From Macrostomum lignano (taxonomy: Eukaryota), in the NCBI GenBank assembly GCA_002269645.1, contig NIVC01000995.1, forward strand, positions 248,001-312,000: 64,000 nucleotides of DNA, read 5' to 3'. This document shows positions 217 through 58,557 of the stretch, piece by piece. Each line of letters starts with the position of its first letter. Position 1 is the stretch's first letter. Both the position numbers and the translations under genes were made by a program. Below the pieces are notes generated by a model. The model made no database searches. It was not told where the DNA came from and was given only the letters and a program-made list of their open reading frames with translations.

Positions 217-365
217 TCACAGAGAAACGCTGACTTCTGCAGCTCCCCCAGCTGTCAGCGAGTTGCTGACGTCAGCAATTTGATCCGGGCAGGTGCGCAA
301 TTGGCGAAGCTCTCCGCTTTGAACCTCAACTGCTCGGCGATGCTGCAGGAGCTGTCGCTGTCTGA

Positions 366-406
<41 letters not shown>

Positions 407-1566: not shown

Positions 1567-2230
1567 AACTTGAAGCTTTTCAGTTTTTGTATCGTCCTTG
1601 TAAGAATATTTTCTGGCCCAGAAGCGAGGCCCAAATGTTATAGTGACGGAGAAAGCGCTCTCAGCCAATCAGGATCTGCCTGCTGGGGGGATTTCTGTCC
1701 CATTGTGGCTTCAGCTTGTTCTTTGCTGCAGATTTTTGACGTTCCTTTTCTACCAAGTTGGGTTTGATTTTTTGGTAAATATTTTGTTAATTCTGGGAAT
1801 CAGAAATGTTCAGGGAATGGGACGGACGCGGGGTTGTCTGTGTAGAAATTGCCATGTTTAGAATCTGGACAAATAAACAGGCACGAAATGCACTGTGGCC
1901 AGCGATAGACCAGAGCCAGAGGGGATAAATTGGAGGACAGTGACTGCAGGAATTTGTTTAAATGGTCCATCTTAAATCGTACCGCAACAAGTTACTAATC
2001 CATCTCACTAGAGCCCTTTGCCTCAAGCATCAATGAGCGATTGGATTAGAAAGCACATGGAAACTTGTTCGCTCCTTAATTGGGGATTAAGCTCAAGATG
2101 TTCTAAGAAAAAAATGATCTTCTCAGTCCAGTCGTTCATTTCTTCATTTCTCTTGTCTAGAAAAAAGGTAAAAAAGGTACGCTGAGTCTGTGGCAAAGTG
2201 CCACTGGACTGATCAGAGGTTGCTTGGGGG

Positions 2231-4634: not shown

Positions 4635-7600
4635 TGTTGTGTTCTAGTTGATTGATTAAATTCAATTCAGTTGGAGACACTTGAGTCTCGCTCAATATAT
4701 TTATACTCATGTGCACGTTGAAAACAGTGTTACGCAATCGAAACAACGATACCATGATTGAACGCACGATGCATATAAGGTAATTGAACAATTCTAGCCT
4801 CAAAGTTAGTTAGTTACAACACCTAGGCCTGATGCACAGTCACTACATTCTCCCCCCTTCCGGAAGAGGATAACGCGCCGGTTGCCGTCGAGCTCGAGTT
4901 GACCTTCGAAGCTCAGGTGGAGGTGGCGGCTCGCCCGTCCGTGGGGGCGGAGCCGGCGGCAGCGGCAAATCGAACCAGTCGTCCTCTTGGTCGGCCGCGC
5001 CGTTGTCAGCCGGTGGGCTGTTGCACTTAACCAGCCGACTCGCTTGCCACTTTGTACCGTCGGACAGCACGAAGGTGTTGCGCCCTGCTTTGGAGGCGAT
5101 CTTTAGCGGTTCCTTCAGTCGGGTCGCCAGCTTGTGCGCTCGGTGCGGCGTCTGTCGCCAGACCCAGTCTCCGGCCTGGAGCATAGAGTCACGAGCTCGC
5201 CTTCGCTTGTTGGTGTAGTCGGCATTCTTGGCTTGCCTCTGTGCGATACTGTCTCGCAGGTCGCTGTCGTCCCGCTGTTGCACTGGAGTTGGCCTGAGTA
5301 GCTGCAGTCCGGACCGCAGCTTGCGCCCGATCATCAGCTCGGCTGGAGTCAGCCCGGTGAGAGCGTGCTGGCTGGTCCTGTAGGTCTTGAGCACCAGGTC
5401 GATGGCGTCCTCGAACTTCGCTCCCGCCCTCAGGTTCGCTGCCAGGCCCTCCTTCAGACTCCGGTTGAATCGCTCGACTCCGCCGTTGCCTTGCGGGTAG
5501 TACCGGCTCACTCGGCTGTGCTTGATGCCCTCGGCTCGCAGGAACTCTTCGAACTCGTCGCTGACGAACTGGGGTCCGTTGTCGCTGATCAGCATCTTCG
5601 GGACTCCCCACCGGCCGAATAGCTTCCGAAGCGTCTTGATGATGTTGGCAGAGGTGACGGTTTCCATGGCTGCAATCTCCGGCCACTTGCTGTACAGGTC
5701 GTGGATCACCAGTAGAAACCGCTGGTGTCGAGGAGCCGCGGCGACCTCGCCGAAGATGTCGATCTCGACCTTGTCCCACGGTCCATCTGGCCACTCGATT
5801 GGTGTCACGATCGTCTGTTGAGGCTTGCCGGACTTCTCGGCCAGAGTGCAGGCCGTGCAGTTCTTGACGTAGTCCTCCACCTGCCGGTCAATTCCAGGAA
5901 ACCAGACCGTGTCGCGGCACCGCTGCTTTGACCGAACGACGCCCGGATGCCCTTCGTGGGCCTCCTCGATGACTTGAAGTCGCAGGCTCGTCGGGATGAT
6001 CGCGCGTTCACCACGACCGAGGCACTGACCGTTGTTCCAGCAGAACAGCTCGTCCCGGACGTTGAAGTACGGCTTTAGAGAGCTGTCCACCTTCGATGGC
6101 CAGCCGCCCGAGATGTACTGCAAAACCGCCTGCAGCACTTCGTCCTCCTTGGTCGCCGTTGCCAGTGCGTCTGCCGTCAGCGTTGTCTTCGAGTCGACGA
6201 CTGCGTAGACGTAGCCCTCCTCGTCGGTCTCCTCGGCTGGAACGCGCTCCGTCGTGGCCCATCTGGACAGCATGTCCGCGCACTTGTTGTCAGCGCCAGG
6301 GATGTGCTCAAACCGGACGTCGTAGCCGCGAAGTCTCTCGACCCATCGATGAATGCGAAGAGGCCTGTGCCCCATGCCTTTCGAGTCGAGCAGAGTTGTC
6401 AGGGCCTTGTGGTCGGTGCGCAGCGTTACTCGTCTGCCGTATAGATAGTAGTGCCAGCGTTCGATGCTCCATACACAGGCCAGGGCTTCTCGCTCTCCGG
6501 CTGAGTATCGCTTTTCCGCTGGGCTGAGTGCTCTCGATGCGAACGCGATTGGCACCTCTTTTTCGTTTTGTACTTGGCTGAGCACTGCCCCCAGTCCGTC
6601 TAGACTTGCATCGCAGGTGACGTACGTCTCAGCTTGGCAGTCAAAATGAGCTAACACTGGGCTGCTGGTTACGGCTGACTTGAGTGTACGGAAGGCTGTA
6701 CGTTCCCGCTCACCCCAGTGCCAGTCCGCGTCCTTTTTGAGCAGTTGTCTCAGAGGCTCGGCAATTGCTGAGTAATGCGGTATGAACTTGTGCAAAAAGT
6801 TCACTGCTCCGAGAAACGATTGAATTTGCGCGACCGTTGATGGCTCAGGAATTCTTAGAATTGCGTCGACGTTGCACTTGGTCGGTTTGATGCCGTCTGC
6901 AGAGATGACCAATCCGAAGAAATCCACGCTCGCCTGCCGGAATTTGCACTTCTCTCGATTGAGTGTGAAGCCTTCGCGATGAATCCGCCCTAGGACTTCT
7001 CGGAGGTTCTTGTCGTGCTCAGTCTCGTCCTTGCCGTGCACCAGGATGTCGTCCACGATGTTGATGGCGCCAGGAGCTCCTCGAAGCACCGTCTGCAGGG
7101 CTCGCTGGAAGGCAGCTCCGGAGCTAGATAGCCCGAATGGCACCACGGTGAACTGGTACAGGCCGGCATCGGTGATGAAGCACGTCAGTCCTCGAGAGTC
7201 TGGATGCAGCGGAATCTGCTGGTAGCCTTGACGCAGGTCCAGCTTGCTGAAGCACTTCGAGCCGTTGATGCTGGCCGATAGGTCCTCGATTGACGGTACC
7301 GGATAGCGGTCCGCGATCACCGCCTTGTTGACCTGCCGCAGATCCACGCAGAGACGAACCTTGTTGGACTCCTTCTTGCGCGTCACGACAACGTTGCTAA
7401 CCCACTCGGACGCGTCGACCTTCTCAATGATGCCCTGTTGCTCCATCCGGCTGATCTCTGACGTCACTTCGTCCTTCAGGCCGATCGGCAGCTTCCGCAT
7501 TGGCTGAGACACTGGCTTGACCGAGGCGTCGATCTTTGTCCGGTGAATGAAGCTCTTGGACCGGCCCAGACCGTCGAAGATTCCGGGGAAGTCGCGCTCG

Positions 7601-8959
7601 ATCGTAGTCTCGCTGATGCTCATCACTCTGTTGTCACCTTGGAAGATTTTGAATCCGAGGGCCTGAAACAGGTCGCGGCCCAGGATGTTCGCTCCTTTGT
7701 CGGCGACGTAGAATGTGGCTTCTGTCCTGATGCCGTTGAACGTCACTGGAAGCTCGACCTTGCCGATGGTCTTGATCGCAGATCCGCCGTATGCCTCCAG
7801 TTTTGTGCTCGTCGGAAGCAGCGGGTGCCTAGCGAAGGACTTCTTGAACGTCTCCATGTTGAGCAACGAAACGGCAGCACCGCAGTCGATTTGCAGTCGA
7901 ATCAGCTGTCCGCCCAGACGGCATTCGCAGAATAAGCTGTCTGTGCTCTTGTTGTTCACGGCCAGGACCGTCAGACTGGACTCTGCAGGCTCTTTGGTGT
8001 CGATCGCAGAGACCGCTTTCATGCGGCACATTTTCGCGAAATGGTTCGTCTTGCCGCATCGTCTGCATTTCTGGCCCATCGCCTTGCATTCGCCCTTGTG
8101 TCCGTGGTTGCCTCCGCATCGAGTGCACTTTGGACCTGCTGCTGCGGTCTTCTCATGGCGAGCAGCTGGCTTCGGCTTCTTGCTCAGCGCCTTCACGTGG
8201 AGCTCTGGGCCGCTGACCTGCTTGGCATCTCTGATGGCTGCTTCGATTCGCTCAGCCTTCTTGATGGCGTCATCTAGCGTCAGATCGTCCTCCTCCATCA
8301 GGAGTCTTTCCCTAATGCGAGGTACGCAGGTTTTCTCCACAAGTTGGTCTCGAATTATTTCGTCGTGAAAGGTGCCAAATTTGCAGTTTGTTGCCAGTTC
8401 TCTCAGGGCCATCACGTAGTCTCCGATGCTCTCGCCGTCGTGCTGGGCTCGCTGCCGAAAGGCGAAGCGCTCTGCTATGACGCTTCTCGACGAGCTGAAA
8501 ATCGCCTTCAGTGCCGTTTTGGTCTCCTGAAGCGACTTGCTTGCATCGACGTTTGCAGCTCGGCGGCGTCCTTCCTCACCAAGCAGATGCAGGAGGATCG
8601 CCTTTTTCCGACTCTCTGATGCCTCTTCGAGAGCTCCAGCTACCAGGAAGTTCTCAAATGACTTGATCCACCTTGCCCATGGCACAGGAGGTTCGCCTGG
8701 TACTGGTTGAAACTCCGCTGGGTACGGGAGTCCGCTCGTCGCCATTTGTTGTGTTCTAGTTGATTGATTAAATTCAATTCAGTTGGAGACACTTGAGTCT
8801 CGCTCAATATATTTATACTCATGTGCACGTTGAAAACAGTGTTACGCAATCGAAACAACGATACCATGATTGAACGCACGATGCATATAAGGTAATTGAA
8901 CAATTCTAGCCTCAAAGTTAGTTAGTTACAACACCTAGGCCTGATGCACAGTCACTACA
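4635..8959 (-). mobile_element. Intact Ty3/Gypsy (Mag-type) LTR retrotransposon, 4325 bp
   Basis: Identical 213-bp LTRs (4635-4847 and 8747-8959) with TG...CA ends. 5-bp TSD CATAA (4630-4634 and 8960-8964). PBS TGGCGACGAG (8744-8735). PPT GGAAGGGGGGAGAA (4861-4848). Confidence 0.97.
4843..8745 (-). CDS. Gag-Pol polyprotein, 1300 aa (Gag with 2 Zn knuckles, protease, RT, RNase H, integrase)
   Basis: Uninterrupted ORF: CRRCGKTNHFAKMC knuckle; IDCGAAVS protease; LDLRQGYQQ and NIVDD RT motifs; TCDASLDGLGAVL RNase H; HEGH...CTAC Zn finger and D-D-E integrase (EID, SDNG, VERFN). Confidence 0.96.
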   Translation of the reverse strand: MATSGLPYPAEFQPVPGEPPVPWARWIKSFENFLVAGALEEASESRKKAILLHLLGEEGRRRAANVDASKSLQETKTALKAIFSSSRSVIAERFAFRQRAQHDGESIGDYVMALRELATNCKFGTFHDEIIRDQLVEKTCVPRIRERLLMEEDDLTLDDAIKKAERIEAAIRDAKQVSGPELHVKALSKKPKPAARHEKTAAAGPKCTRCGGNHGHKGECKAMGQKCRRCGKTNHFAKMCRMKAVSAIDTKEPAESSLTVLAVNNKSTDSLFCECRLGGQLIRLQIDCGAAVSLLNMETFKKSFARHPLLPTSTKLEAYGGSAIKTIGKVELPVTFNGIRTEATFYVADKGANILGRDLFQALGFKIFQGDNRVMSISETTIERDFPGIFDGLGRSKSFIHRTKIDASVKPVSQPMRKLPIGLKDEVTSEISRMEQQGIIEKVDASEWVSNVVVTRKKESNKVRLCVDLRQVNKAVIADRYPVPSIEDLSASINGSKCFSKLDLRQGYQQIPLHPDSRGLTCFITDAGLYQFTVVPFGLSSSGAAFQRALQTVLRGAPGAINIVDDILVHGKDETEHDKNLREVLGRIHREGFTLNREKCKFRQASVDFFGLVISADGIKPTKCNVDAILRIPEPSTVAQIQSFLGAVNFLHKFIPHYSAIAEPLRQLLKKDADWHWGERERTAFRTLKSAVTSSPVLAHFDCQAETYVTCDASLDGLGAVLSQVQNEKEVPIAFASRALSPAEKRYSAGEREALACVWSIERWHYYLYGRRVTLRTDHKALTTLLDSKGMGHRPLRIHRWVERLRGYDVRFEHIPGADNKCADMLSRWATTERVPAEETDEEGYVYAVVDSKTTLTADALATATKEDEVLQAVLQYISGGWPSKVDSSLKPYFNVRDELFCWNNGQCLGRGERAIIPTSLRLQVIEEAHEGHPGVVRSKQRCRDTVWFPGIDRQVEDYVKNCTACTLAEKSGKPQQTIVTPIEWPDGPWDKVEIDIFGEVAAAPRHQRFLLVIHDLYSKWPEIAAMETVTSANIIKTLRKLFGRWGVPKMLISDNGPQFVSDEFEEFLRAEGIKHSRVSRYYPQGNGGVERFNRSLKEGLAANLRAGAKFEDAIDLVLKTYRTSQHALTGLTPAELMIGRKLRSGLQLLRPTPVQQRDDSDLRDSIAQRQAKNADYTNKRRRARDSMLQAGDWVWRQTPHRAHKLATRLKEPLKIASKAGRNTFVLSDGTKWQASRLVKCNSPPADNGAADQEDDWFDLPLPPAPPPRTGEPPPPPELRRSTRARRQPARYPLPEGGRM

Positions 8960-25468: not shown

Positions 25469-26902
25469 ATGTCGTCACAGCAGCTAGCAACTACAACAGC
25501 GGCTGCTGTGGTGACCGCCAATACCAGCGTCAAAACTGCGCTACAGCTGGAGGAGGAGTGGGGCAGCCTCTTCTACACCAGACTGAACTCCTACTTCCTC
25601 ATCTGGTACCTGCCACTGATTTTGTTGATTGGCACCCTGGGCGCTGTTTTCTGTACGCTCTTCATCTTCATGTCGAAGATGTTCCCAAAGATTATTCAGG
25701 TCTGGCTCATTAGCATCTGCTTTGGTGATTTTATGATCCTTATGTGGGACGCTCTGCGGATGTTCACGAAAATGGCGTTCGACTACGACTTCCGCGATTC
25801 TGGCGTGGTCATCTGCAAACTTCAGGCCTACCTTGGCAACTTCTTCTTTCACTGGAGTGCCTACAATCAGGCTGCAATGTCCATTCAGCGCCTCATTTTT
25901 ATCAGTTTCCCGCTGCGCTCGAGAACTTTGCTCACCACGCGACGGGTGATCGGTATCTGGGCCTGCATGGGCCTGCTACTGCTGTTCCCCAACATCACTT
26001 ACCTCATCTACTGGCACATCGGCAAGCGAGACGACTGCGAGCCAGTGGACAAATGGTTCTATTACGTCACAACTCTAGTGCACTTGGTGGTCTGGGGCAT
26101 CATTCCGCTAGCATCTATGACCATTTCCACTGGTTGCATCTCTTTCCGGCTGATCCGCTACCGCCGGTCCAATTTTAAGGCGAAAAGTGACGGAGTTGGC
26201 AGCGGTGGAGGAGGAGAAGCCATTAGTGGCGGAGCTTTAGAGCCTCACCAGCCAGCTGCAGCCGGAGGAAGGCGTCACGGATCTGACCAGGGAGCCCATG
26301 TTACACGTCTGCTAGTTTCCATGAACCTGTTCTACCTGTTCACAACCTTCCCGCTGCTCATCTACATGATGCATCTAAATTTCCGCCTCGAGAACAAGGT
26401 CGGCGTCACCATTGCCAAGAGCTTGCACAAGTCCTACTACTACCTGTTCCGGTCGATCGCATTCCTGAACGCCTCCCTGAATTGGGTGTTCTACTGCGCT
26501 GCTGGCAAAATCTTCCGCCAGGCTGCCAAGCGCATCCTGTGCAGGCTGTTCTGCCCGCACCGGCTTCGATTCAGGGGCGGAATGGGCGGCGCAGCGGCTC
26601 CTCACCGGCACCATCGAAACCACCAGCACCACGTACTGCAGAATCGACGGGCTGGTTCACCAGACGCCTCCGAGGCCACCGCAACTGCGACTGCAACTGG
26701 AACGACGGTGCCGCTGCTCAAGAAACAGCAACAGAGTCCGCTTGACTGCTCGCAAAGCGATTGCGATTGCAACGCAACAGCGGCGCAAGTTGCCTTTAGC
26801 GCAGACGGAGTCAGCAGCGATGACTACTGCTGCAAGAGCGCCGGCTGCGGTGGCGGCAGCGACCGGGCCATTCCCCTGCAGCCTCGGCTGTCAGCTGACT
26901 GA
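25469..26902 (+). CDS. Intronless orphan rhodopsin-like (peptide-receptor type) GPCR, 477 aa
   Basis: Seven hydrophobic segments; TM2 Asp (CFGD); Cys at the top of TM3 and in ECL2; MSIQRL at the DRY position; FP in ICL2; TM7 NASLNWVFY. GC-rich coding island. Confidence 0.85.
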   Translation: MSSQQLATTTAAAVVTANTSVKTALQLEEEWGSLFYTRLNSYFLIWYLPLILLIGTLGAVFCTLFIFMSKMFPKIIQVWLISICFGDFMILMWDALRMFTKMAFDYDFRDSGVVICKLQAYLGNFFFHWSAYNQAAMSIQRLIFISFPLRSRTLLTTRRVIGIWACMGLLLLFPNITYLIYWHIGKRDDCEPVDKWFYYVTTLVHLVVWGIIPLASMTISTGCISFRLIRYRRSNFKAKSDGVGSGGGGEAISGGALEPHQPAAAGGRRHGSDQGAHVTRLLVSMNLFYLFTTFPLLIYMMHLNFRLENKVGVTIAKSLHKSYYYLFRSIAFLNASLNWVFYCAAGKIFRQAAKRILCRLFCPHRLRFRGGMGGAAAPHRHHRNHQHHVLQNRRAGSPDASEATATATATGTTVPLLKKQQQSPLDCSQSDCDCNATAAQVAFSADGVSSDDYCCKSAGCGGGSDRAIPLQPRLSAD

Positions 26903-32954: not shown

Positions 32955-34615
32955 TGACATGGAGGCCTGAGATGTCAAGGCTCACAGGGGGGAATAGCTG
33001 AGATGTCAAGGCTCACGGGGGGGAATAGCTGAGATGTCAAGGCTTATGAGGAGGGGGGAATAGCTGAGATGTCAGGGCTCATGAGGAGGGGGAATAGCTG
33101 AGATGTCAAGGCTTATGAGGAGGGGGAATAGCTGAGATGTCAGGGCTCATGAGGAGGGGGAATAGCTGAGATGTCAGGGCTCATGAGGAGGGGGAATAGC
33201 TGAGATTTCAAGGCTTATGAGGAGGGGGAATAGCTGAGATGTCAAGGCTTATGAGGAGGGGGAATAGCTGAGATGTCAGGGCTCATGAGGAGGGGGAATA
33301 GCTGAGATGTCAGGGCTCATGAGGAGGGGGAATAGCTGAGATGTCAAGGCTTATGAGGAGGGGGGAATAGCTGAGATGTCAAGGCTTATGAGGAGGGGGG
33401 AATAGCTGAGATGTCAGGGCTCATGAGGAGGGGGAATAGCTGAGATGTCAGGGCTCATGAGGAGGGGGAATAGCTGAGATGTCAAGGCTCATGAGGAGGG
33501 GGGATAGCTGAGATGTCAAGGCTTATGGGGAGGGGGAATAGCTGAGATGTCAGGGCTCATGAGGAGGGGGAATAGCTGAGATGTCAGGGCTCATGAGGAG
33601 GGGGAATAGCTGAGATTTCAAGGCTCACGGGGGGAATAGCTGAGATGTCAAGGCTCACGGGGGGGAATGGCTGAGATGTCAAGGCTCACGGGGGGGAATA
33701 GCTGAGATGTCAAGGCTCACGGGGGGGAATGGCTGAGATGTCAAGGCTCACGGGGGGGAATGGCTGAGATGTCAAGGCTCACGGGGGGGGAATAGCTGAG
33801 ATGTCAAGGCTCACGGGGGGGGGAATAGCTGAGATGTCAAGGCTCATGAGGAGGGGGGATAGCTGAGATGTCAAGGCTTATGGGGAGGGGGGATAGCTGA
33901 GATGTCAAGGCTTATGGGGAGGGGGGATAGCTGAGATGTCAAGGCTCATGAGGAGGGGGGATAGCTGAGATGTCAAGGCTCACGGGGGGAATAGCTGAGA
34001 TGTCAAGGCTCACGGGGGGGGGAATAGCTGAGATGTCAAGGCTCATGAGGAGGGGGGATAGCTGAGATGTCAAGGCTTATGGGGAGGGGGGATAGCTGAG
34101 ATGTCAAGGCTTATGGGGAGGGGGATAGCTGAGATGTCAAGGCTCATGAGGAGGGGGGATAGCTGAGATGTCAAGGCTCACGGGGGGGAATAGCTGAGAT
34201 GTCAAGGCTCACGGGGGGGGGAATAGCTGAGATGTCAAGGCTCATGAGGAGGGGGGATAGCTGAGATGTCAAGGCTTATGGGGAGGGGGGATAGCTGAGA
34301 TGTCAAGGCTTATGGGGAGGGGGGATAGCTGAGATGTCAAGGCTTATGGGGAGGGGGGAATAGCTGAGATGTCAGGTCTTACGGGGAGGGTGAATAACTC
34401 AAAAGTCAGGGCTCAAAAGTCAGGATAATAAGTCAGGGCTTATGGGGAGGGGGGAATAGCTAAGATGTCAAGGCTTATGGGGAGGGGGGAATAGCTGAGA
34501 TGTCAGGGCTTACGGGGTTATTTCTGAGATGGTCAGAAGCTAGATGTAGTTTATTCAAAAATTTGTATTCGATTCTTTGTTGACTCCCCAACAGGGGCAC
34601 TGATTGCTACATGTA
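32955..34615 (+). repeat. ~31-32-bp minisatellite (GAATAGCTGAGATGTCAAGGCTYAYGRGGRGGGG, ~48 copies) within modular repeat copy B
   Basis: Tandem array ~32960-34520, followed by the same terminus as copy A (CTCCCCAACAGGGGCACTGATTGCTA). Confidence 0.9.
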
Positions 34616-36812: not shown

Positions 36813-36916
36813 ATGAGGCCTGCGCCTCTGTTGCTTCTGCTCAGCCAGGCGCCGCTGCTTCTGCTGCTTTTGCTGATTTCTGGCTGCCTGAACACCTGCG
36901 GAGCGATTCAATGGCT
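36813..36916 (+). CDS. Wnt: Wnt exon 1 (signal peptide)
   Basis: MRPAPLLLLLSQAPLLLLLLLISGCLNTCGAIQW, then CT|GTGAGT donor (phase 2). Confidence 0.85.
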
Positions 36917-36964
36917 GTGAGTGCTGCTCTACTTGTCAGTGCTCAGCCCTCCCATCCTCAGTCC

Positions 36965-38452
36965 TGATCTCACCACTCTCCCCGCTATCCCTGACCAGTG
37001 CTCACCACTCTGCCTCTATCCCTGACCAGTGCTCACCACTCTCCACTCTATCCCTGACCAGTGCTCACCACTCCCCTCTATCCCTGACCAGTGCTCACCA
37101 CTCTCCACTCTATCCCTGACCAGTGCTCACCACTCTCCACTCTATCCCTGACCAGTGCTCACCACTCTCCCCTCTATCCCTGACCAGTGCTCACCACTCT
37201 CCACTCTATCCCTGACCAGTGCTCACCACTCTCCCCTCTATCCCTGACCAGTGCTCACCACTCTCCACTCTATCCCTGACCCTGACCAGTGCTCACCACT
37301 CTCCTTTCTATCCCTGACCAGTGCTCACCACTCTCCTTTCTATCCCTGACCAGTGCTCACCACTCTCCCTCTATCCCTGACCAGTGCTCACCACTCCCCT
37401 CTATCCCTGACCAGTGCTCACCACTCTCCACTCTATCCCTGACCAGTGCTCACCACTCTCCCCTCTATCCCTGACCAGTGCTCACCACTCTCCTTTCTAT
37501 CCCTGACCAGTCCTCACCACTCTCCACTCTATCCCTGACCAGTGCTCACCACTCTCCCTCTATCCCTGACCAGTGCTCACCACTCTCCCCTCTATCCCTG
37601 ACCAGTGCTCACCACTCTCCCTCTATCCCTGACCAGTGCTCACCACTCTCCCTCTATCCCTGACCAGTGCTCACCACTCTCCCCTCTATCCCTGACCAGT
37701 GCTCACCACTCTCCCCTCTATCCCTGACCAGTGCTCACCACTCTCCCCTCTATCCCTGACCAGTGCTCACCACTCTCCTCTCTATCCCTGACCAGTGCTC
37801 ACCACTCTCCCTCTATCCCTGACCAGTGCTCACCACTCTCCCTCTATCCCTGACCAGTGCTCACCACTCTCCTTTCTATCCCTGACCAGTGCTCACCACT
37901 CTCCCCTCTATCCCTGACCAGTGCTCACCACTCTCCCTCTATCCCTGACCAGTGCTCACCACTCTCCCCTCTATCCCTGACCAGTGCTCACCACTCTCCC
38001 CTCTATCTTTGACCAGTGCTCACCACTCTCCCTTTATCCCTGACCAGTGCTCACCACTCTCCCCTCTATCCCTGACCAGTGCTCACCACTCTCCTTTCTA
38101 TCCCTGACCAGTGCTCACCACTCTCCACTCTATCCCTGACCAGTGCTCACCACTCTCCCTCTATCCCTGACCAGTGCTCACCACTCTCCCCTCTATCCCT
38201 GACCAGTGCTCACCACTCTCCTTTCTATCCCTGACCAGTGCTCACCACTCTCCCTCTATCCCTGACCAGTGCTCACCACTCTCCCCTCTATCCCTGACCA
38301 GTGCTCACCACTCTCCCCTCTATCCCTGACCAGTGCTCACCACTCTCCCCTCTATCTTTGACCAGTGCTCACCACTCTCCCTCTATCCCTGACCAGTGCT
38401 CACCACTCTCCCTCTATCCCTGACCAGTGCTCACCACTCTCCCCTCTATCCT
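36965..38452 (+). repeat. 31-32-bp minisatellite (CCCTGACCAGTGCTCACCACTCTCCCCTCTAT), ~47 copies, filling Wnt intron 1
   Basis: Read directly; lies between donor 36917 and acceptor 38465. Confidence 0.95.
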
Positions 38453-38465
38453 GGCCGCTCCACAG

Positions 38466-38731
38466 TGGCCTGTACAAACTGGAAGCCCGCGCCGACAGAC
38501 CGGTCCAGAGCAACTTCTGCCAGGCCATGCAGTCGCGGATGATCTTCGATTTGAGCCAGGCCAAGTTCTGCAAAAAATGGACTCGAAGGGCAGCCAAGGC
38601 AGCCATTGTTTCCTCTCTGATCGAGGCCTCCAAGCAGACTTTGGCACTCTGCCAGCAGCAATTTCGCGGCTTCAGGTGGAACTGCGGCGTGCTGGAGCAC
38701 GTTCCTGAACTGGCGCCCGAGCTGCGAACCC
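38466..38731 (+). CDS. Wnt: Wnt exon 2
   Basis: CCACAG| acceptor; GLYK...FC...FC...LCQQQFRGFRWNC (Wnt CQxQFxxxRWNC motif); C|GTGAGT donor (phase 1). Confidence 0.9.
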
Positions 38732-39004
38732 GTGAGTGTCTCTAAAAGCACCAAGGATGGAATGTACTAGTAAATTTTTAAATCAACATCTCAAAAAAGG
38801 ATTTGGCATCATCATTATTTTAAACTTTTATTCTTTTGGCAAAACAATTCTCGCCGCTCTGTGTAACGTTCGCTTGGAATATCAAGCCAGCACATGTTCG
38901 ATAGATGTTACTAGCAATCAACCCCCCCCCAAGCCAACCAAGAATGAAACGTAAATTTTTTAATAAACTAAATGTAGCTTCTCGTTGCAATAACCTCAAC
39001 AATT

Positions 39005-39200
39005 AAGTCTTGACAGCTCAGCTATTCCCTCCGTAAGCCTTGAAATCTCAGCATTTCCCCCTAACCCTAACAATATCCCTAACTCCAAACCTAACCCTAA
39101 CCCTAACAGCAAAGACTTGACAGCATTATAGTGATTTCCTCCAAGACTTGACATCCCAAATTAATCTTCTATGTTCGACATGACGCTTCTTTTCTTTTTT
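39005..39200 (-). repeat. Modular repeat copy C (inverted) in Wnt intron 2
   Basis: Reverse complements of GAATAGCTGAG..TCAAG, TTAGGG runs and the CATAGAAG/GTCATGT module. Confidence 0.65.
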
Positions 39201-39282
39201 AAACGTCTGCCTGGGGACTGAACTGGCGTTTGGAGGCTGTTGGTTCAACATGAGCATTTGAAAGGCTTGTTAAGTGAGGGGC

Positions 39283-39560
39283 GGAGCAAGCTCAGCAGTT
39301 TACGCATCGGACACTCGCGCCAGGGTTGTTGGTTCGATTCTTGGATTGCTTGCTTGGATTTGGAATTTGAGCACTGAATGATGGCGTGAGGGTATGTCGT
39401 GCAATTTCACCCGCGAGACCCAACTCTCAAGGCACAGAGTGTGTACATCGCCTGACAATGTGACAGTCAAGGTCGCTGTACACCCAGTATGAGCGCGTGC
39501 CTGCGCACGTATCACTAGACAAAGGTTGCTAACACGTTGATGACCTAGTGCAGAGGCCTT
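39283..39560 (+). mobile_element. tRNA-derived SINE family A copy in Wnt intron 2
   Basis: GGTTCGATTC B-box; body GGAATTTGAGCACT...CAAGGCACAG..GTGTACAT matches the reverse complement of 42700-42932. Confidence 0.75.
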
Positions 39561-39639
39561 TGACACTTTGACACTTACAGTAGCACTGCTGTAAGAAACA
39601 CAGTAAATATAATTTGGATATTTTTCACGCACCACCCAG

Positions 39640-40142
39640 TGACAGCGGAGCAGGCCCTGGTGCACGCAATGTCCGGCTTTGTGCTGGCCACCACGCTGGC
39701 CAACGACTGCGCCAGAGGCGTCATCGCCAACTGCCCGTGCGGCGCCGAGCCCAGATGGCTGCGCGCCAGGTGGCCCGAGGTGCGCTTCAGCTTGGAAGGC
39801 TGCCACACCAACCTGCGCATGGGCCAGCGCCTGGCGCGCCAGTTCCTGGGCTTTGCCGGCAAGAGGAAGCGCGCGCGAAGGCGGAGGCCGAGAGGCCGCA
39901 GGACAGTGAAAACCTTCGATAGATTCGTCAAAAAGGTGAATCGGCACAATTATCGGGTGGGCATCAGGGCTACGAAGCACAGCGAAGCGGTCAGGTGCAA
40001 ATGCCACGGCAGCAGCGCCTCCTGCACGATCAGAACCTGCCACAAGGTGCTGCACCAGCGAGGCATCCAGATGATTCCGTCTGCCTACGTGCGGCGCTAC
40101 GAAGACGATCCTATCGATTTTTTAATTAACCTGTACGATAAG
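39640..40142 (+). CDS. Wnt: Wnt exon 3
   Basis: CCCAG| acceptor; TAEQALVHAM...DCARG...CPC; HNYRVG; CKCHGSSASCTIRTC lipidation hairpin; AAG|GTGAGG donor (phase 0). Confidence 0.92.
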
Positions 40143-40450
40143 GTGAGGCTCAAATTCGAACTATCACATAATTGTTGAGGTAGTTTAATTCATAATTATT
40201 CTACTTAGGCGATATGGAAGAGGTTTTAATAAGATGGAAAATATTTGGGATTTAAAGGATACGCGATACAGCAGGCGTACAGTATTGGCGGGCTTGTGTG
40301 TGCTCAAGGAGTCAGTTTTAGGGGTGGGACGATTTCGCGAAAGGCGTCCTCCCTTTCCTGCTGCAAATTGATGAATTATTTCTACTATCTCGGATGAAGT
40401 CGAGAGGTGAGAACGAAGCCTGAGTTCATAAATATAATTCCCCAATCCAG

Positions 40451-40677
40451 CAAAACCTGCGCCGCACCATATTTGACGAGCGCGGCTACCAAGGCTACGA
40501 GGAGCGCTGCACCGAGGCTGACAGGCAGGCTGGCAGCAACCCCCTGGCGGCGAAGCCGCTGTGCGAGTCATACAAAGTTGTCCCCGGCCTGCCCCGGGCA
40601 AGCGTGCTGCTGTTCAAGGAGCACTCGCTGGACTACTGCTCACGGAGGGAGGACGTTTATCCGGGAACTAGTAACAG
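40451..40677 (+). CDS. Wnt: Wnt exon 4
   Basis: ATCCAG| acceptor; reads QNLRR...LLFKEHSLDYC...YPGTSN (cf. LVYLxxSPDYC...GTxGR); AG|GTGAGA donor (phase 2). This frame is not in the ORF track. Confidence 0.85.
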
Positions 40678-40929
40678 GTGAGAACACTATGAGAACACTC
40701 AACCAAGGAGTGTGCATACAATAGCTCGCGCCAAAGAACTCGTTGACAGTGGGCTTGTTTGATTCCATAAAACATAAATTTGAGGCTCGTGCACAAAATA
40801 CTCGTATTTAAACCCATGAGGGCCAACCAAGAGGCCGCTGTGTCTACGTACGTATCCGCATGAGTTCTCAACATAGGTCAGAAAAATTGACACGAGAGCT
40901 TGCCTGCCTAACGTCGTGTTGACTTGGGG

Positions 40930-41185
40930 TAGTGCCCAAAGTCCTTATGAGTTAACCAACAAACTAAAAAGTGCCCAAAGCCCTTATGAGTCAACCAACA
41001 AACTAAAAAGTGCCCAAAGCCCTTATGAGTCAACCAACAAACTAAAAAGTGCCCAAAGCCCTTATGAGTCAACCAACAAATAAAAAGTGCCCAAAGCCCT
41101 TATGAGTTAACCAACAAACTAAAAAGTGCCCAAAGCCCTTATGAGTTAACCAACAAACTAAAAAGTGCCCAAAGCCCTTATGAGT
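40930..41185. repeat. 39-bp tandem repeat, ~6.5 copies, Wnt intron 4
   Basis: Unit AAAAAGTGCCCAAAGCCCTTATGAGTYAACCAACAAACT. Confidence 0.9.
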
Positions 41186-42699
41186 CGTCTCAATGATGCT
41201 TGGGCATCGGGCCCCAGTTGCAGACAGTACTTCTTCTGCTTTAAGGAATCAGGACTCAGAATATTACAAGAGTGTTTACCGCATGGGCACCCTCTATCTT
41301 GCGGCTTTTGGCGACAGTCAGTCATGTACACTCTCTGTGCCTTGAGGTTCGCCCTCCCTGGGTGTGAATAGACTGACAAACCCCAGGCCAGAACTCCATG
41401 TCGAAAGTCCGACCATCTTGGGGGGGGGGCGGTAAATGCGTCTGACTATTCCGGTTGGGCTTGTGAGATTTACACGCGACGCAGAGTTGGGGCTGGATGA
41501 GGAGGGATTGGGAAGAGCGGAGGGCGAAGACTGAGTGGATTGAAGCTTCCGCCCGGTTTTCATTGTTTTTTTCTCAAGCATTTTTTATATCAAAATGGTT
41601 GGCCAGGTGATAGGCGCTGGTGGATAGACACTGCTCACTGGGGCAAAGGGTGGCGACTTTTCAGTTGTTGAGTACAAGTCACTGCCGCGTCTGCGCGCTT
41701 TTGCTTGTGCGCGCTTATGCTTGTGCGCGCTTATGTCAGATATTGTAAAAAATACACATGCGCCGGGGCGAACACAGTTCATTTCAGGCGCATCCAATGC
41801 CAATAGAAATGGCCTCATATATCTAACTTACGGCCTGATAGAGACCCAACTTCCGGGATCTGTTGCAGGTGCTTTGGGGGAGGGGGCGCCGCGGCTGCCC
41901 ACGGAGAGTTGGACAAATTTATGACCCCCAACAGGCCCGCACTGCCTTGAAATCCCAGACGGCTATTAATAAGCTGGGCTGCCAAAACCAGCGGCTAAAC
42001 AGCGCTGCCCCCCCCCCAGATTGGATTGTTGGGACCGGGGAGTTGAAGTCCGAGATTCCTGGAACCCGGCGCTGCATGGCCGAGACGCGGAGCTCTAAAT
42101 CGAGCAATTGGAATGGAAGCTGATGAAGTGGCCGAAGCTTCTGCATGTTTGGATCGTACTTTTTTTCAGAAACTAACATGTATCTCTTATTACGATAAAT
42201 AGGTTGATACGCGCAGTTATTAGCAAACTTTGAAACGCAATTAAATTTATAATTATTGTAATCCAGTTGAGATGATCGGCGACATGCAGTCAGTTTCCAA
42301 TCCGGATAGCTAGTTTTAGAGCTCCATGGCGGAGGCGGCGGGCGCCAAACCGCCGCTCCGCTCCAGCCCGCGGCAGAGGGGGCCATGATTGATTGTCTCG
42401 CACCGGGCCCCGCATAGTTCCGCTATCAGGCCCCAATCTGTGCATTGGAAGCCACTCGGCCTACCCAGCCGGCCACTCAAAAGCCCGAAAAATCGCCCGA
42501 ACCTCCCCCCCCCCCACCACCACCGCTAAACAACAGGCCGAGGCTGCGGGCTGTTCAGGCCGCCAGTAATATTGAGTTCCTTGATATCTACAGGTGAAAA
42601 TTCATAGCTAAATATTTATTGTGAATATTGTGAATATTAGCTGCGTTTAGCGAACAGGGCCCTCGACTCACAATCGTGCCTTGACCTTCGTCATTTGAG

Positions 42700-42932
42700 T
42701 CAGATAGTAGTGAGGCGGCAAGCAGTCCGCCGACCGGATGCGTATGTAGGGGGTGCACGACGGCCCTGACTTTCTTATCATCAGGCATGTACACTCCCTG
42801 TGCCTTGTGGGTTGGCCTTCATGAGCGATAATCGCACGACAAGCTCTCATACCATTACTTAGTGCTCAAATTCCGAATCCGGAATCGAACCAAGGGACTC
42901 TGGTGCGAGAGTCAGACGGGCTACCGCTTGAC
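42700..42932 (-). mobile_element. tRNA-derived SINE family A copy in Wnt intron 4
   Basis: - strand head GGATGAGTAGTCAAGCGGTAG...GGTTCGATTCC (A/B boxes) plus the family core. Confidence 0.75.
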
Positions 42933-42992
42933 TACTCATCCAGGAATGTTCCTTTGCGTACCTAATTATCCTATGATCTGCCCCACCCGCAG

Positions 42993-43227
42993 GGAATGCC
43001 TGCCAGACGGCAGCCCGGAGGCGCAGCAGATTCTGGCCAGCGACACAGGGGAGCGCCGGCGCGAGATCCTCTGCAGCGTGATGTGCTGCGGCCGGCCCTA
43101 CAGGAACGTCACGGTCAGCTATCCAGGCAACCATCCCGACTGCAAGGCCAAGTCCTGCCGTCTGTTGCAGAATCCGTTCAGAGTGGACTGCCAGCCCTGC
43201 GTGCTGTCGAAATCTTTCTGCAGTTGA
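42993..43227 (+). CDS. Wnt: Wnt exon 5 (C-terminal Cys-rich domain). Total CDS 1335 nt, 444 aa; divergent, Wnt11-like features
   Basis: CCGCAG| acceptor; (R)ECLP...CSVMCCGRPY...C..C...FCS*. All four junction phases are compatible and exon lengths sum to a multiple of 3. Confidence 0.9.
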
Positions 43228-43349: not shown

Positions 43350-43720
43350 CTATCGGCCCTTTGCCAGCTCCTTCTTTACGGCGCTTTTCTGCTCTCTGTC
43401 CGACTCTGTCCGACCCTGTCTGAGTATGTACGAGTCAGTCCGACCCTGTCCGATACTGTCCGAGTCAATCCAATACTGTCCGACCCTGTCCGATACTATC
43501 CGACCCTGTCCGACCCTGTCCGATAGTGTCCGACCCTGTCCCACCCTGTCCGATACTGTCCGAGTCTGTTCGACCCTGTCCGGGACTTCCTGTACTGTCC
43601 GACCCTATTCGATCTTATCCGACCTAGTACAACCTGTCCGGCTCTGACTTGCTCTGTCCGACTCTTTCCGACCCTTCCGACACTATCAGACTCTCTCAGA
43701 ACCTGTCCGACCCTGTCCGG
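43350..43720. repeat. Degenerate ~10-bp repeat (TGTCCGACCC)n downstream of the Wnt stop
   Basis: Read directly. Confidence 0.8.
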
Positions 43721-44704
43721 CTCTGTCCAATTCTCCCGGCTCTGCTGTCTTCTTCTATCTCAAACACTGTTTTCATATCTGTCTTCCTTCATTGCGCCAC
43801 TCGAAGGGCTGGTCCATATCGCCACGATAAACATGGCAGTCTTCCTCCTATCTGCCTGAAGCCGCGCAGTATTTCAGCTGCTGGTTTATAAGGAACAGAT
43901 CGAATGTAAGATGGTTTTTCGCCTTAAATTAAATCATTCTTGTCTTTGATATTCATCTTACTAGCCGTTCGCCCGCACTCTACTACTGGAGTAGTAGAAG
44001 AGGCATTTGTGGGGTGAATAAAATTCGGATTCTTATTGGTAAAAACTATTTACGTGGCTCAAAAAGACTGTGTGTGTATTTTTCTCGTCGTTTCCCTTGC
44101 CTCTTGCCCCTAAAAAACTTCTATTAAGCTTAGACAGACACTAGTGGCTTGTGTACATGTGACAATACGCTTGCAAACTTATTCAGCAAAAACATGGTTC
44201 TGTTAGTAGACTATCGTATTGTGCAGTGAAATTTTTATAAATGCAAAGTCGCTGCTTTTTATCATTTATTCTACTCTTTATCCAATGCTAAATACACATC
44301 ACTGCCTCATCTAATTTTTTTCAACGGAAAAATACCTGAAATTTGTGGAGAAACTTTTGATTTTGCAGTTCGGGTAAACTGGAACAGAATCGACTGAGGC
44401 GCGGAATCTGAGTACTGGGAATTTGGTTGAGGGGAATCCGATTGAAGGGAATTCAGTTCAGGGAACGCGGGCTGGCCTGGGTCGCCTTATGCTCGGTGCA
44501 CTCGGTGCTGCGATCTGAGGCTCTGGATGACGGGACAAGCTATTTCGAGCAGTCGTCGAGACTGTTCTGCTCTACAACCCTGACGCTGAACCCTGGACAC
44601 TGACGGATGCCCTGGAGAAACAGCTGGACGCCGCGCACTCTGCGATGCTGCGCTCTGCGTTCGACGTGCGCTGCGGCAGGGGTTCGAAGCCCAACGTCGA
44701 GCTC

Positions 44705-53200: not shown

Positions 53201-53586
53201 AAGAACTGAACGGATTTTTGCCAAAGGAGCTATTGAGCTGGGACACAAACGGAATCCGGGAAAACTGAAAAGAGCTTTCAATCGAAACCGAGTGAAGGAT
53301 AAAGTGCAGCAGAATGATGAATTTCCTAGTGACGCAGGACTTGACGCCTGAATCCAGTAAACATGCGACTTTCCCAAAAACTGTTTTCTCCCCAGACTTG
53401 TCTTCTTCTGGTTGGGAGGACAGCATGACGGAGAAAGAGAAATAACAGAAACAGTGAATTCTCGCACAGAACCTTCCTTTTCCCACAAGATTCTCTTCCT
53501 TCAGCTGATGAAACAAGAAAATTTCTAGTTTACAGCATTGCTTGGCTCTGCGCGTTTTGGCAAGAATAAAAAGACATAAATAAAAA

Positions 53587-53848
<262 letters not shown>

Positions 53849-54769
53849 GCCAGTTCCGCAATCCGATTAACCAGACCGGTTCAACTTGGTGGACAGGGAT
53901 GAGTTTTCGCTCGCTAAGTCCGGCAGTCGCAGATGTTTCGCTTCCCGCCTGAAACGGCGACCCCCCGCAGGCGGCCCCACTTCCCATAAGCTCCGGCTAA
54001 GTGCCACATAAGGATAAGTCCGCGGCTCCAGGGTCAAGCCGCAGGTAAACATGTGTTTCTCTTCAAGCCAAGCAGGCAAAGCTGCTACATTTAGCAGACC
54101 AGAGGGAAACAAATTTGTTGCCGAACACTCGGCCAGGCAGCCCCGCAGGCGTCCTCTGCAGCTGCCAGTCACGGCCCGAAAACCCCTCTTCCCCTAGCAA
54201 CGGCATCGCCCGGGCCTAACAAGCCCTGGCATAGTTTAGTCCTTCATGAACTGCACTCCGCATTTCTCTGAAATCCCACAACCTGAGCAGAGAGGAAGGC
54301 GAAATCGGGATGGCATTTTTAGACTGAATTATTTGCAGACTCCGCGCGGCCCGTCATCAACCCGGAATAATTGCAGGGATTGGGAGATGCGGATTAGCTG
54401 AGCTCGAAGGGTTTAGGCAGGCAGGCAGGCAGGGCGGCACAGTGCATGCCCAATGCCAAACATTCGGCTCTCTCGCTTCTCCTTCCGCCGTTTCTCTTCC
54501 ACTCTCGAAACACCCGGGCTGGGGGCAGGCAGCTTCCCCGAGCAGTTAATTAGGGTAGAGGAGGGAGGTGGCGAGGAGTGTAACAGCTGGGTTGTAGACA
54601 GGAGACTGAAGCTCACCGCAACATGCGCGCCTTAATACCCTTCAATCTTGAGTACAACTTATGTCTATTAACTCAGCATTTCGATCGGGATTAATGAGAA
54701 TATTCCTGTGGCTCAATCCGCTACCTGGATTCTGAAAATTTGATAGTGATTCTCCCATACCTGCAGTCG

Positions 54770-57301: not shown

Positions 57302-58557
<1,256 letters not shown>

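Follow-up and report, generated by a model that had tools for sequence, protein, structure and literature searches.

Gene structure and annotation

The 64-kb window, i.e. the whole stretch of Macrostomum lignano DNA that was analysed, carries on its forward strand a Wnt gene of five exons (36813-43227), which comprises 444 codons and a stop codon in an uninterrupted frame and has GT-AG sites at all of its exon borders. Exon 1 (36813-36916) contains the start codon, a putative Leu-rich signal peptide and the motif AIQWL, and is closed by a GTGAGT donor in phase 2; exon 2 (38466-38731) encodes the N-terminal helices with the first four conserved cysteines and the motif FRGFRWNC; exon 3 (39640-40142) encodes the core of the N-terminal domain and the thumb; exon 4 (40451-40677) encodes the linker, including a Macrostomum-specific insert of approximately 30 aa, followed by LLFKEHSLDYC; and the last exon, exon 5 (42993-43227), encodes the C-terminal domain, from ECLPDG via MCCGRPY to the stop codon. 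The CCGR motif (43084-43095) is located within exon 5, as is a 13-aa Macrostomum-specific insert after REC. Intron 1 is filled by a minisatellite of 46.7 copies of a 32-bp unit (36969-38451), which is much shorter in the homeologous copy of the gene (L002). Intron 4 had seemed to contain a tRNA-like or SINE element, but ARAGORN and Rfam gave no match.

The spliced 444-aa product is 100% identical to an annotated M. lignano protein (P0300; PAA64909.1/PAA73760.1), and the gene overlaps the partial model BOX15_Mlig019668g1. The Pfam wnt profile (PF00110) is matched with 133.3 bits against a cut-off of 20.3 (E 1.7e-38), residues 78-437 corresponding to profile positions 15-296 of 305. The preliminary description of this locus had reported an intact reading frame, which is borne out by the five exons and the identical database protein, and had considered that the gene might be unexpressed or use another last exon with the Trp-Cys-Cys (WCC) motif. 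The GenBank annotation of the assembly was built from RNA-seq with StringTie/TransDecoder (PMC5730564), so that the model derives from transcripts and the gene is transcribed. Neither strand of the window contains an exon for WCC, or for C-x-C-[FYW] within a Wnt-like sequence, and the CCGR motif and the index finger share one last exon in all three Macrostomum paralogs (see below). A literature search returned no published mention of Mlig019668, and no expression or RNAi report for this gene.

Thumb, N-terminal motifs and linker

The signal peptide, as judged by eye only, consists of a Leu-rich h-region with a small residue (Gly) at position -1, directly before AIQWL (36903-36917), which would then open the mature protein and is comparable to the AI[KQ]WL of Wnt11. 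The variants AIKWL and AIRWL are found in flatworm and arthropod Wnt11. Translation confirmed both of the motif changes that had been proposed for the N-terminal domain, LEGC replacing WGGC (39792-39803) and TCH replacing TCW (40035-40043), and placed HNYRVG instead of HNNxAG at 39945-39962. The LEGC site reads FEGC and FDGC in the two paralogs and varies among flatworm Wnt11 proteins (WGGC, WAGC, WSGC, FAGC, YEGC and HSGC), while the residue following the thumb TC, His in the window protein, is Phe, Tyr or Ile in other flatworm Wnt11. A Lys/Arg-rich segment, KRKRARRRRPRGRR (residues 198-211; 39861-39902), is modelled by AF2 as a loop of low confidence; arthropod Wnt11b has basic inserts at the equivalent position, before HNN.

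The thumb hairpin, CKCHGSSASCTIRTCH (39996-40043), aligns with the CKCHGVSGSC of Wnt5a and Wnt3a. It contains the acylated-Ser motif CKCHGSSASC (39996-40025), whose retention had been correctly noted before, and SCTIRTC (40020-40040). In the alignment, Ser249 (codon at 40014-40016) is the counterpart of the Ser that is palmitoleoylated in Wnts, and the complete acylation hairpin pattern C-x-C-H-G-x-S-x-x-C-x-x-[KR]-x-C, including this conserved Ser, is found in CKCHGSSASCTIRTC; by this alignment Ser249 is most probably acylated by Porcupine. The linker encoded by exon 4 possesses a pair of cysteines, C311 (40508-40510) and C329 (40562-40564), which is extra compared with canonical Wnts, and is modelled by AF2 with strands at residues 294-300 and 303-310.

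Index finger and predicted structure

Few features of Wnts are as conserved as the Trp-Cys-Cys fingertip, which belongs to the two-site mode of Frizzled binding described in textbooks. Positions 43141-43227 of the window read CKAKSCRLLQNPFRVDCQPCVLSKSFCS followed by the stop codon, so that the C-terminus departs from the canonical tip, as had been claimed. In the index finger (C417-S444; 43141-43224) the cysteines C417, C422, C433, C436 and C443 are separated by KAKS, RLLQNPFRVD, QP and VLSKSF, respectively, with a single Ser at the end; the tip loop comprises L425-R430 (43165-43182), with N427-P428-F429 (43171-43179) at the tip. The earlier statement that the F-x-W-C-C tip is gone holds for the Trp and the vicinal Cys-Cys, both of which are lost, but the finger as such is remodelled rather than missing: 10 of the 12 cysteines of the C-terminal domain still align, including those of the hairpin, hydrophobic Leu424 stands at the Phe position, Val431 is kept on the return strand before the next Cys, and Phe429 is new at the tip. 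The overall number of cysteines is 24, as in canonical Wnt11.

The AF2 model (pLDDT 85.2, pTM 0.84) predicts a two-domain Wnt fold, composed of a helical N-terminal domain with the thumb and a cysteine-rich hairpin. The finger hairpin is confidently predicted (strands 422-424 and 431-433, pLDDT 85-95), and a short helix (415-421) is modelled where canonical Wnts carry C-x-C. By homology, we infer that the ladder disulfides C417-C436 and C422-C433, as well as C398-C443, are retained. All ten top Foldseek matches are Wnts, with E values as low as 3.5e-16 and a target-normalised TM of 0.61-0.72, the best being Wnt3/Fz8-CRD, Wnt7a and XWnt8, while the C-terminal domain alone, compared by sequence with PDB entries, found no Wnt even at E <= 10.

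Drosophila WntD, which is among both the sequence and the fold matches, is likewise a natural Wnt that is devoid of a hallmark receptor contact. WntD has no acylated Ser and hence no lipid (site 1), and keeps its finger; the window protein is its reverse, with the lipid site kept and the finger tip changed. The predicted fold of the window protein superposes on XWnt8 and Wnt3 in their complexes with the Fz8 CRD (4F0A and 6AHY), and has in common with these paradigms the acyl-Ser thumb hairpin and a disulfide-laddered C-terminal hairpin. Residues of XWnt8 that touch Frizzled beyond Trp319 and Cys320-Cys321 are reportedly given by Janda et al. 2012. Trp319 and the Cys320-Cys321 tandem constitute the characteristic tip of XWnt8 that fits a pocket on Fz8 (PMC6040091), in the place of which the window protein has Gln/Asn-Pro-Phe.

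Paralogs, homeologous copies and selection

Macrostomum has at least three old paralogs of this kind, the window gene among them, and near-identical homeologous copies exist for each. The homeologous copy of the window gene, L002, encodes an identical protein, and the two older M. lignano paralogs (55-60% identity) have the same finger, C-x4-C-[RK]-L-L-x-N-P-[FY]-R-V-x-C-x2-C. All three paralogs display the same five-exon architecture with a last exon of 235-238 bp. Because the L002 protein is identical and the two paralogs keep the same finger, the odd finger is no chance or sequencing quirk.

Neutral evolution, raised earlier as a possibility, was looked for and not seen in the homeologous copies. 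The window gene and L002 differ by four synonymous and no non-synonymous changes, where neutral evolution would predict approximately 13 non-synonymous ones at a dS of ~0.013, with an intron mismatch of 0.6-2.8%; the copies of the P0002 paralog differ by 14 synonymous and no non-synonymous changes. The homeologous copies are the informative comparisons for selection, the dN/dS of 0.2-0.36 between the old paralogs being of limited value because dS is saturated. The window gene is under purifying selection.

Wnt11 ancestry

Homologs were collected by profile searches, as the full-length query alone was swamped by low-complexity words and gave 3 matches; a C-terminal query of 153 aa missed even its identical database entry, which reflects how the word index works rather than a true absence. 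The non-flatworm matches are dominated by Wnt11 from arthropods, annelids, nemerteans and vertebrates, the nearest being those of Hyalella, Daphnia, Schistocerca and Sogatella. Together with motifs common to flatworm Wnt11, these match lists back the Wnt11 ancestry at which the preliminary description had hinted. Three such motifs are found in all three members of the Macrostomum trio and in none of 87 non-flatworm relatives: HNY (26 of 28 flatworm Wnt11), F-x-E-H-S-x-D-[YF]-C (22 of 28), and a residue other than Trp after the thumb TC (27 of 27). A neighbour-joining tree based on 343 columns groups the trio with flatworm Wnt11 at 48% bootstrap, its deep nodes being unsupported; it does not join flatworm Wnt11 to other Wnt11, for which long-branch attraction is a possible cause.

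A recent preprint (Gasiorowski et al. 2026) on M. cliftonense and M. hystrix reports several Wnt11 copies in Macrostomum as well as macrostomorph-specific WntM ligands that could not be assigned, with which the family of three paralogs described here agrees; the text consulted contains no mention of cysteines or of the C-terminus. On the best reading of the sequence comparisons, the trio belongs to the flatworm Wnt11-type lineage, and could carry either name, Wnt11 or WntM.

Loss of the Trp-Cys-Cys tip in flatworms

The loss of the tip, which the preliminary description had noted for the window gene, is not an innovation of that gene: it is common to the two paralogs and to all complete flatworm Wnt11-type proteins checked. 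A finger without Cys-Cys is found in 25 of 25 complete proteins of this type from planarians, cestodes and trematodes, among them Schmidtea mediterranea Wnt11-2 (P0208, CGCFIDDKFKIQCDDC) and wnt11-1 (P0209), and, by inspection and outside these 25, in a monogenean protein. WCC is kept in 82 of 82 complete non-flatworm relatives, which are mostly Wnt11. The combination of a finger lacking Cys-Cys and a return strand in which [KR]-[VI]-x-C follows an aromatic residue is likewise present in 25 of 25 flatworm proteins and in 0 of 82 others; compare NPFRVDC of the window protein with KQFRVIC, EGFKVKC and DKFKIQC of flatworm Wnt11. Judging from these sequences, the tip was lost long ago in the lineage, and its absence is no peculiarity of a single gene. 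Sporadic tips without Cys-Cys were observed elsewhere, in an octocoral Wnt4a-like protein, a mite Wnt5b and a priapulid Wnt9a-like protein. Our literature search found no published remark on the missing cysteines of flatworm Wnt11, which does not prove that such reports are absent.

Flatworm Wnt11 (S. mediterranea wnt11-1, B0LMF9, and Wnt11-2, C3U5B2; Dendrocoelum T1E1C8/T1E100; and the Wnt11a/b of cestodes, trematodes and monogeneans) resembles the window protein in the finger without Cys-Cys, whose next Cys is preceded by F-[KR]-[VI], in HNY, F-x-EHS-x-D[YF]C and the missing Trp after the thumb TC, and in AI[KQR]WLG at the mature N-terminus and the retained acyl-Ser hairpin, although identity is only 26-31%. 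At the finger base, the Macrostomum trio has C-x4-C (C417-KAKS-C422 in the window protein) where flatworm Wnt11 has C-x-C; the trio further differs by one additional tip residue (N-P-F), LEGC/FEGC/FDGC, a His after TC, and the inserts in the linker (with its new Cys pair) and after R-E-C. The trio is thus more derived than other flatworm Wnt11, and therefore its receptor usage could differ from that of planarian wnt11-1 and wnt11-2. Canonical Wnt11 (vertebrate WNT11 and arthropod Wnt-11b), which provides the best non-flatworm matches, shares with the window protein the AIKWL-type start, SC(S/T)IRTC and the cysteine number, but keeps C-x-C-[KR]-Y-x-W-C-C-x-V-x-C, WGGC and TCW in all 82 complete sequences, none of which the window protein has.

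Putative function and alternative explanations

Considering sequence, structural model and the analogy with its relatives together, the window gene is likely to encode a functional, secreted and most probably Porcupine-acylated ligand of the flatworm Wnt11 type, whose site 2 was remodelled long ago and whose receptor specificity has probably changed. In the scenario that we infer for how the protein is lipidated, pairs its cysteines, binds Frizzled and acts in the animal, the tip with Trp and vicinal Cys-Cys would have been replaced, in the ancestor of the flatworm Wnt11 lineage and no later than the split of Macrostomorpha from the remaining rhabditophorans, by a disulfide-free turn (Q-N-P-F in Macrostomum, x-x-F in other flatworms). 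The lipid thumb would remain the main Frizzled contact (site 1), and the hydrophobic hairpin residues Leu424, Leu425, Phe429 and Val431 would form a changed site 2, so that receptor preference may be altered and binding not abolished. By analogy to planarian wnt11-1 and wnt11-2 and to tapeworm wnt11a/b, the protein would most likely act as a positive signal in posterior or tail patterning. RNAi of Smed-wnt11-1 leads to short tails and that of wnt11-2 to tailless animals (PMC4661829); according to a section heading of this article, wnt11-2 cooperates with wnt1 in the specification of posterior identity. Tapeworm wnt11a/b are posterior markers (PMC4778295).

These phenotypes bear directly on the suggestion that the protein is a natural antagonist or decoy, whose lipid enters the Frizzled groove while site-2 and co-receptor contacts fail and other Wnts are blocked. 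The missing Trp and vicinal disulfide, which fit the Fz8 pocket (PMC6040091), and the linker rebuilt with an extra Cys pair would suit such a protein, but such a role is hard to reconcile with the planarian relatives that have this type of finger and whose knock-down removes or shortens posterior structures as expected of ligands, with the cooperation of wnt11-2 and wnt1, and with hydrophobic tip residues that are conserved under selection. Since relatives with the same tip act as positive posterior ligands, we regard an antagonist role as decidedly unlikely, and no new class of Wnt antagonist is revealed on present evidence. It is somewhat less improbable, though still doubtful, that the protein is a Frizzled-independent ligand, whose C-terminal domain and linker would have become adapted to Ror, Ryk, Ptk7 or a different receptor, CRD binding being weak or dispensable. 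Ligands of the Wnt11 class are typically beta-catenin-independent. The posterior Wnt signals of planarians are concluded to be so in part (PMC4661829), and the C-terminal domain matches no solved Wnt by sequence; against this, the acyl-Ser hairpin of site 1 is fully kept, the hairpin scaffold and hydrophobic positions of site 2 are retained, and no evidence points to any alternative receptor.

The trio could also represent the macrostomorph-specific WntM instead of Wnt11, in which case its tip would have disappeared independently of the loss in the other flatworm Wnt11. The WntM ligands reported for Macrostomum (Gasiorowski et al. 2026), the bootstrap value of only 48%, and the CC-less tips scattered among octocoral, mite and priapulid Wnts are compatible with such a convergent loss. 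It is nevertheless unlikely in view of four independent derived characters that the trio has in common with flatworm Wnt11 and that are absent in the 87 non-flatworm relatives, namely an F-[KR]-V return strand together with the loss of Cys-Cys, the two motifs HNY and F-x-EHS-x-D[YF]C, and a residue other than Trp behind TC. A decaying gene or a mis-annotated last exon, to which nothing points beyond the unusual motifs, an N-terminally truncated P0001 model and aberrant ends in some UniProt P0003 models, is effectively refuted by the intact ORF with GT-AG sites throughout, the identical protein at the diverged L002 homeolog with exclusively synonymous changes, and a transcript-derived model whose architecture is conserved in the paralogs, with no WCC exon in the window.

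Within the favoured reading of a remodelled flatworm Wnt11-type ligand, it is possible, albeit tentative, that such ligands represent a natural separation of function for site 2 that extends across the phylum, and that they signal positively without the Trp and vicinal-disulfide tip, either via a co-evolved pocket in the Frizzled CRD or through engagement of another receptor or co-receptor by the remodelled finger, in Macrostomum together with the linker hairpin, which the new disulfide would stabilise.

Significance

The Wnt11 genes of a whole animal lineage have lost the Trp-Cys-Cys tip, and for two of them loss of function has a clear effect on patterning. What looked like the curiosity of a single gene thereby becomes a comparative system for the contribution of site 2 to affinity and Wnt-Frizzled specificity, which permits tip swaps between flatworm and canonical Wnt11 and gives a motive to seek co-evolved Frizzled CRDs. 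Macrostomum, a transgenic regeneration model, offers a three-paralog family of what are, by analogy, candidate posterior Wnts, with further unique changes such as a putative extra linker disulfide and the C-x4-C finger base. If flatworm Wnt11-type ligands do signal positively without the tip, the canonical tip would not be essential for Wnt activity, and an alternative code of receptor recognition would exist.

Structure of the gene and its product

The Wnt gene consists of five exons with GT-AG borders on the forward strand (window 36813-36916, 38466-38731, 39640-40142, 40451-40677 and 42993-43227), which join into a 444-codon ORF without interruption. Its product shows 100% identity to M. 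lignano database proteins, being the same at every residue as P0300 (PAA64909.1/PAA73760.1); the gene is already present in databases, under the names 'hypothetical protein' or 'Protein Wnt'. The 22.4 kb of DNA surrounding it show no difference from GenBank contig NIVC01000995.1. Since the GenBank annotation of the assembly is based on RNA-seq (STAR, StringTie, TACO, a de novo transcriptome and TransDecoder; PMC5730564), splicing is transcript-derived right through to the last exon, and the cDNA support asked about in the preliminary description is largely provided.

The protein scores 133 bits against the Pfam wnt model, and its N-terminal domain matches the solved Wnt5a, Wnt3a, Wnt8, Wnt3 and Wnt7a. 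The acylation hairpin, or thumb (site 1), reads CKCHGSSASCTIRTCH, with Ser249 aligning with the acylated Ser of CKCHGVSGSC in Wnt5a and Wnt3a. LEGC stands in the position of WGGC and TCH in that of TCW. The C-terminus, encoded at window 43141-43227, reads CKAKSCRLLQNPFRVDCQPCVLSKSFCS and is followed by the stop codon. The preliminary description, which had reported a C-terminus without WCC, both substitutions and a conserved lipidated-Ser thumb, was accurate on all these points. A scan of the 64-kb window found no WCC in a Wnt context on any other exon, hence no alternative WCC-containing last exon, and the finger lies on the same exon as the MCCGR motif. A Lys/Arg-rich loop, KRKRARRRRPRGRR (residues 198-211, window 39861-39902), includes a number of dibasic and R-x-[KR]-R-like motifs, so that it may serve for proprotein-convertase cleavage or for heparan-sulfate binding; it is longer in the paralogs, and a basic insert is likewise found there in arthropod Wnt11b.

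Nearly all of intron 1 is occupied by a 32-bp minisatellite (window 36969-38451, 46.7 copies, 94% matches); this intron measures 1549 bp in the window versus 536 bp (8105-8640) in L002, the homeologous locus, the array length differing approximately threefold. There are three further tandem arrays. One precedes the start codon by about 2.3 kb (34-bp unit x46.5, window 32967-34510), one lies inside intron 4 (39-bp unit x6.6, window 40931-41186), and one begins about 170 bp past the stop codon and probably belongs to the 3' UTR or flank (degenerate 20-bp unit x17, window 43396-43728). Two very long pure microsatellites were found, a (CTAT)n of about 314 copies with 99% identity (window 57302-58557) and an (AGAC)n of about 68 copies (window 53586-53853). 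A 1300-aa reverse-strand ORF (window 4843-8745) with reverse transcriptase, RNase H and integrase domains is consistent with a Ty3/gypsy-type retrotransposon pol; nearby, on the opposite strand, lies a 463-aa ORF with a gag-type aspartyl protease domain (window 2718-4109, forward). Two GPCR genes neighbour the locus, both long single-exon ORFs for rhodopsin-family 7TM receptors (window 217-1668, reverse, 7tm_1 1.5e-73; window 25469-26902, forward, 7tm_1 2.5e-15).

Remodelling of the index finger

By alignment, ten of the twelve canonical cysteines of the C-terminal domain are kept (C354, C369, C394, C398, C399, C417, C422, C433, C436 and C443), the tandem Cys-Cys being the only ones absent. 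By homology with the disulfide map of canonical Wnts (WNT3A/XWnt8; UniProt, Janda et al. 2012), the bonds are presumably C354-C399, C369-C394, C398-C443, C417-C436 and C422-C433, and on this map both ladder disulfides holding the hairpin are expected to survive.

In the XWnt8-Fz8 complex the fingertip comprises the Cys320-Cys321 tandem and Trp319, whose side chain sits in a pocket of Fz8 (PMC6040091). The corresponding finger here is C422-R-L-L-Q-N-P-F-R-V-D-C433, which keeps the basic residue after the Cys, a hydrophobic residue (Leu424) at the Phe position and Val431 two residues ahead of the next Cys, has Gln/Asn-Pro-Phe in place of Trp-Cys-Cys, and is one residue longer. As scaffold and hydrophobic positions are kept, site 2 is remodelled rather than deleted; the Trp-Cys-Cys tip is lost, as first described.

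An AlphaFold2 model built on an 85-sequence alignment (mean pLDDT 85.2, pTM 0.84) superposes on Wnt3/Fz8-CRD, Wnt7a and XWnt8. It predicts the finger (pLDDT 85-95) as strands 422-424 and 431-433 with loop 425-430 between them, followed by a strand at 436-443. Residues 415-421, in the place of the canonical C-x-C, are predicted as a short helix.

Paralogs and selection

Two M. lignano paralogs, P0002 (450 aa) and P0172/P0003 (478 aa), show 55-60% identity to the window protein and are encoded by five exons laid out alike, the last of which measures 235 or 238 bp. The trio has in common the finger C-x4-C-[RK]-L-L-x-N-P-[FY]-R-V-x-C-x2-C-x-L-x-K-S-x-C, together with [LF][ED]GC, TCH, HNY/FNY/YNY, the basic loop, an additional linker Cys pair and a 13-aa insert after R-E-C.

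Compared with L002, the introns differ by 0.6-2.8% mismatches and the CDS at four positions only, all four synonymous (317 synonymous and 1015 non-synonymous sites; dS ~0.013), with no non-synonymous change observed versus approximately 13 amino-acid changes expected under neutrality. The two loci of P0002 likewise differ by 14 synonymous and no non-synonymous changes. Between the old paralogs dN/dS is 0.2-0.36, an upper bound because dS is saturated. The synonymous-only homeolog differences therefore indicate that the gene is neither a pseudogene nor neutrally evolving; it is an expressed gene under selection. A pseudogene or mis-annotation is refuted by the transcript-derived model, the intact ORF and the synonymous-only divergence.

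Fingertip loss across flatworm Wnt11

We built a profile from the M. lignano proteins and compared it with 1.84 billion representative proteins. Scores fell from 605 bits for the own family to 148 bits for the next matches, which included arthropod Wnt11 and several flatworm proteins. A second profile search retrieved Schmidtea mediterranea Wnt11-2 and wnt11-1, two Dendrocoelum Wnts and Wnt-11 proteins of Echinococcus, Clonorchis, Sparganum, Cichlidogyrus, Fasciola, Schistosoma, Hymenolepis and Mesocestoides; after the flatworms, nearly all matches were Wnt11 of arthropods, annelids, nemerteans, echinoderms and vertebrates. The Wnt11 ancestry proposed earlier agrees with these matches and with the derived motifs common to flatworm Wnt11.

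The vicinal Cys-Cys and the Trp are absent from all 25 complete flatworm proteins, whose fingers follow C-x-C-[RVIFE]-x3-4-[FY]-[KRVN]-[VI]-x-C-x2-C (for example CNCRITKQFRVICSKC, CNCRMGEGFKVKCDEC, CGCFIDDKFKIQCDDC and CRCELVDVYIVKCKQC); the monogenean P0034, scored as truncated and kept outside this count, is CC-less by inspection. By contrast with the longer window finger, the other flatworm Wnt11 proteins retain the canonical loop length, with Phe or Tyr at the second Cys position. C-x-C-[KR]-[YF]-x-W-C-C-x-V-x-C is kept in 82/82 complete non-flatworm matches. On the sequences compared, fingertip loss is a trait of flatworm Wnt11 and not peculiar to the window gene. The searchable literature yielded no statement on flatworm Wnt11 without the Trp-Cys-Cys fingertip, although one may already have been published.

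HNY for HNN occurs in 3/3 of the trio, 26/28 flatworm Wnt11 and 0/87 non-flatworm proteins; F-x-E-H-S-x-D-[YF]-C for [VI]-Y-x3-S-P-D-Y-C in 3/3, 22/28 and 0/87; and a residue other than Trp following T-C of the thumb in 3/3, 27/27 and 0/87. In a neighbour-joining tree the trio is monophyletic (100% bootstrap) and sister to other flatworm Wnt11 with 48% bootstrap, the deep nodes being unresolved. The most economical reading of these characters is a single loss in the lineage stem, predating the split of Macrostomorpha from other rhabditophorans. Convergent loss, with the trio representing the 'WntM' group of a 2026 preprint that surveyed the Macrostomum Wnt complement in sister species, is possible, given that CC-less tips turn up sporadically elsewhere, and is disfavoured by four derived characters common to the trio and flatworm Wnt11. 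The sporadic cases, octocoral Dendronephthya Wnt-4a-like (P0059), mite Fragariocoptes Wnt-5b (P0053) and priapulid Priapulus Wnt-9a-like (P0110), may reflect repeated loss in animals or gene-model errors.

Functional implications

In the window protein the acylation hairpin and the finger scaffold are both intact, the latter with an altered tip. Smed-wnt11-1 and -2 have the same CC-less type of finger. The planarian study (PMC4661829) describes short tails after Smed-wnt11-1 RNAi and tailless animals with reduced posterior markers after Smed-wnt11-2 RNAi, and a section heading states that wnt11-2 and wnt1 cooperate in posterior identity specification; in tapeworms, wnt11a/b are markers of the posterior pole (PMC4778295). 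These planarian and tapeworm relatives have been studied thoroughly. By analogy, we infer a positive patterning ligand, probably posterior. The natural antagonist suggested in the preliminary description fits poorly with planarian wnt11 genetics, in which RNAi leads to tail loss or shortening.

Wnt11-class ligands often act via non-canonical receptors, and a sequence search with just the C-terminal domain gives no match to any solved Wnt, both of which would suit a Frizzled-independent ligand; the fully retained site-1 hairpin argues for Frizzled use, and we regard a Frizzled-independent role as unlikely. For a positive patterning ligand, the lipid thumb would be the main Frizzled contact, and the remodelled hydrophobic finger (Leu424, Leu425, Phe429 and Val431) would make a changed, probably more selective site-2 contact. 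More speculatively, co-receptor or matrix interactions may be further altered by the Lys/Arg-rich loop and by the linker hairpin, which is Macrostomum-specific and has a new Cys pair.

The clade-wide loss is a more interesting outcome than the window gene itself. It agrees with ordinary ligand genetics, and the tip-altered flatworm Wnt11 proteins offer a natural experiment on the role of Wnt site 2.
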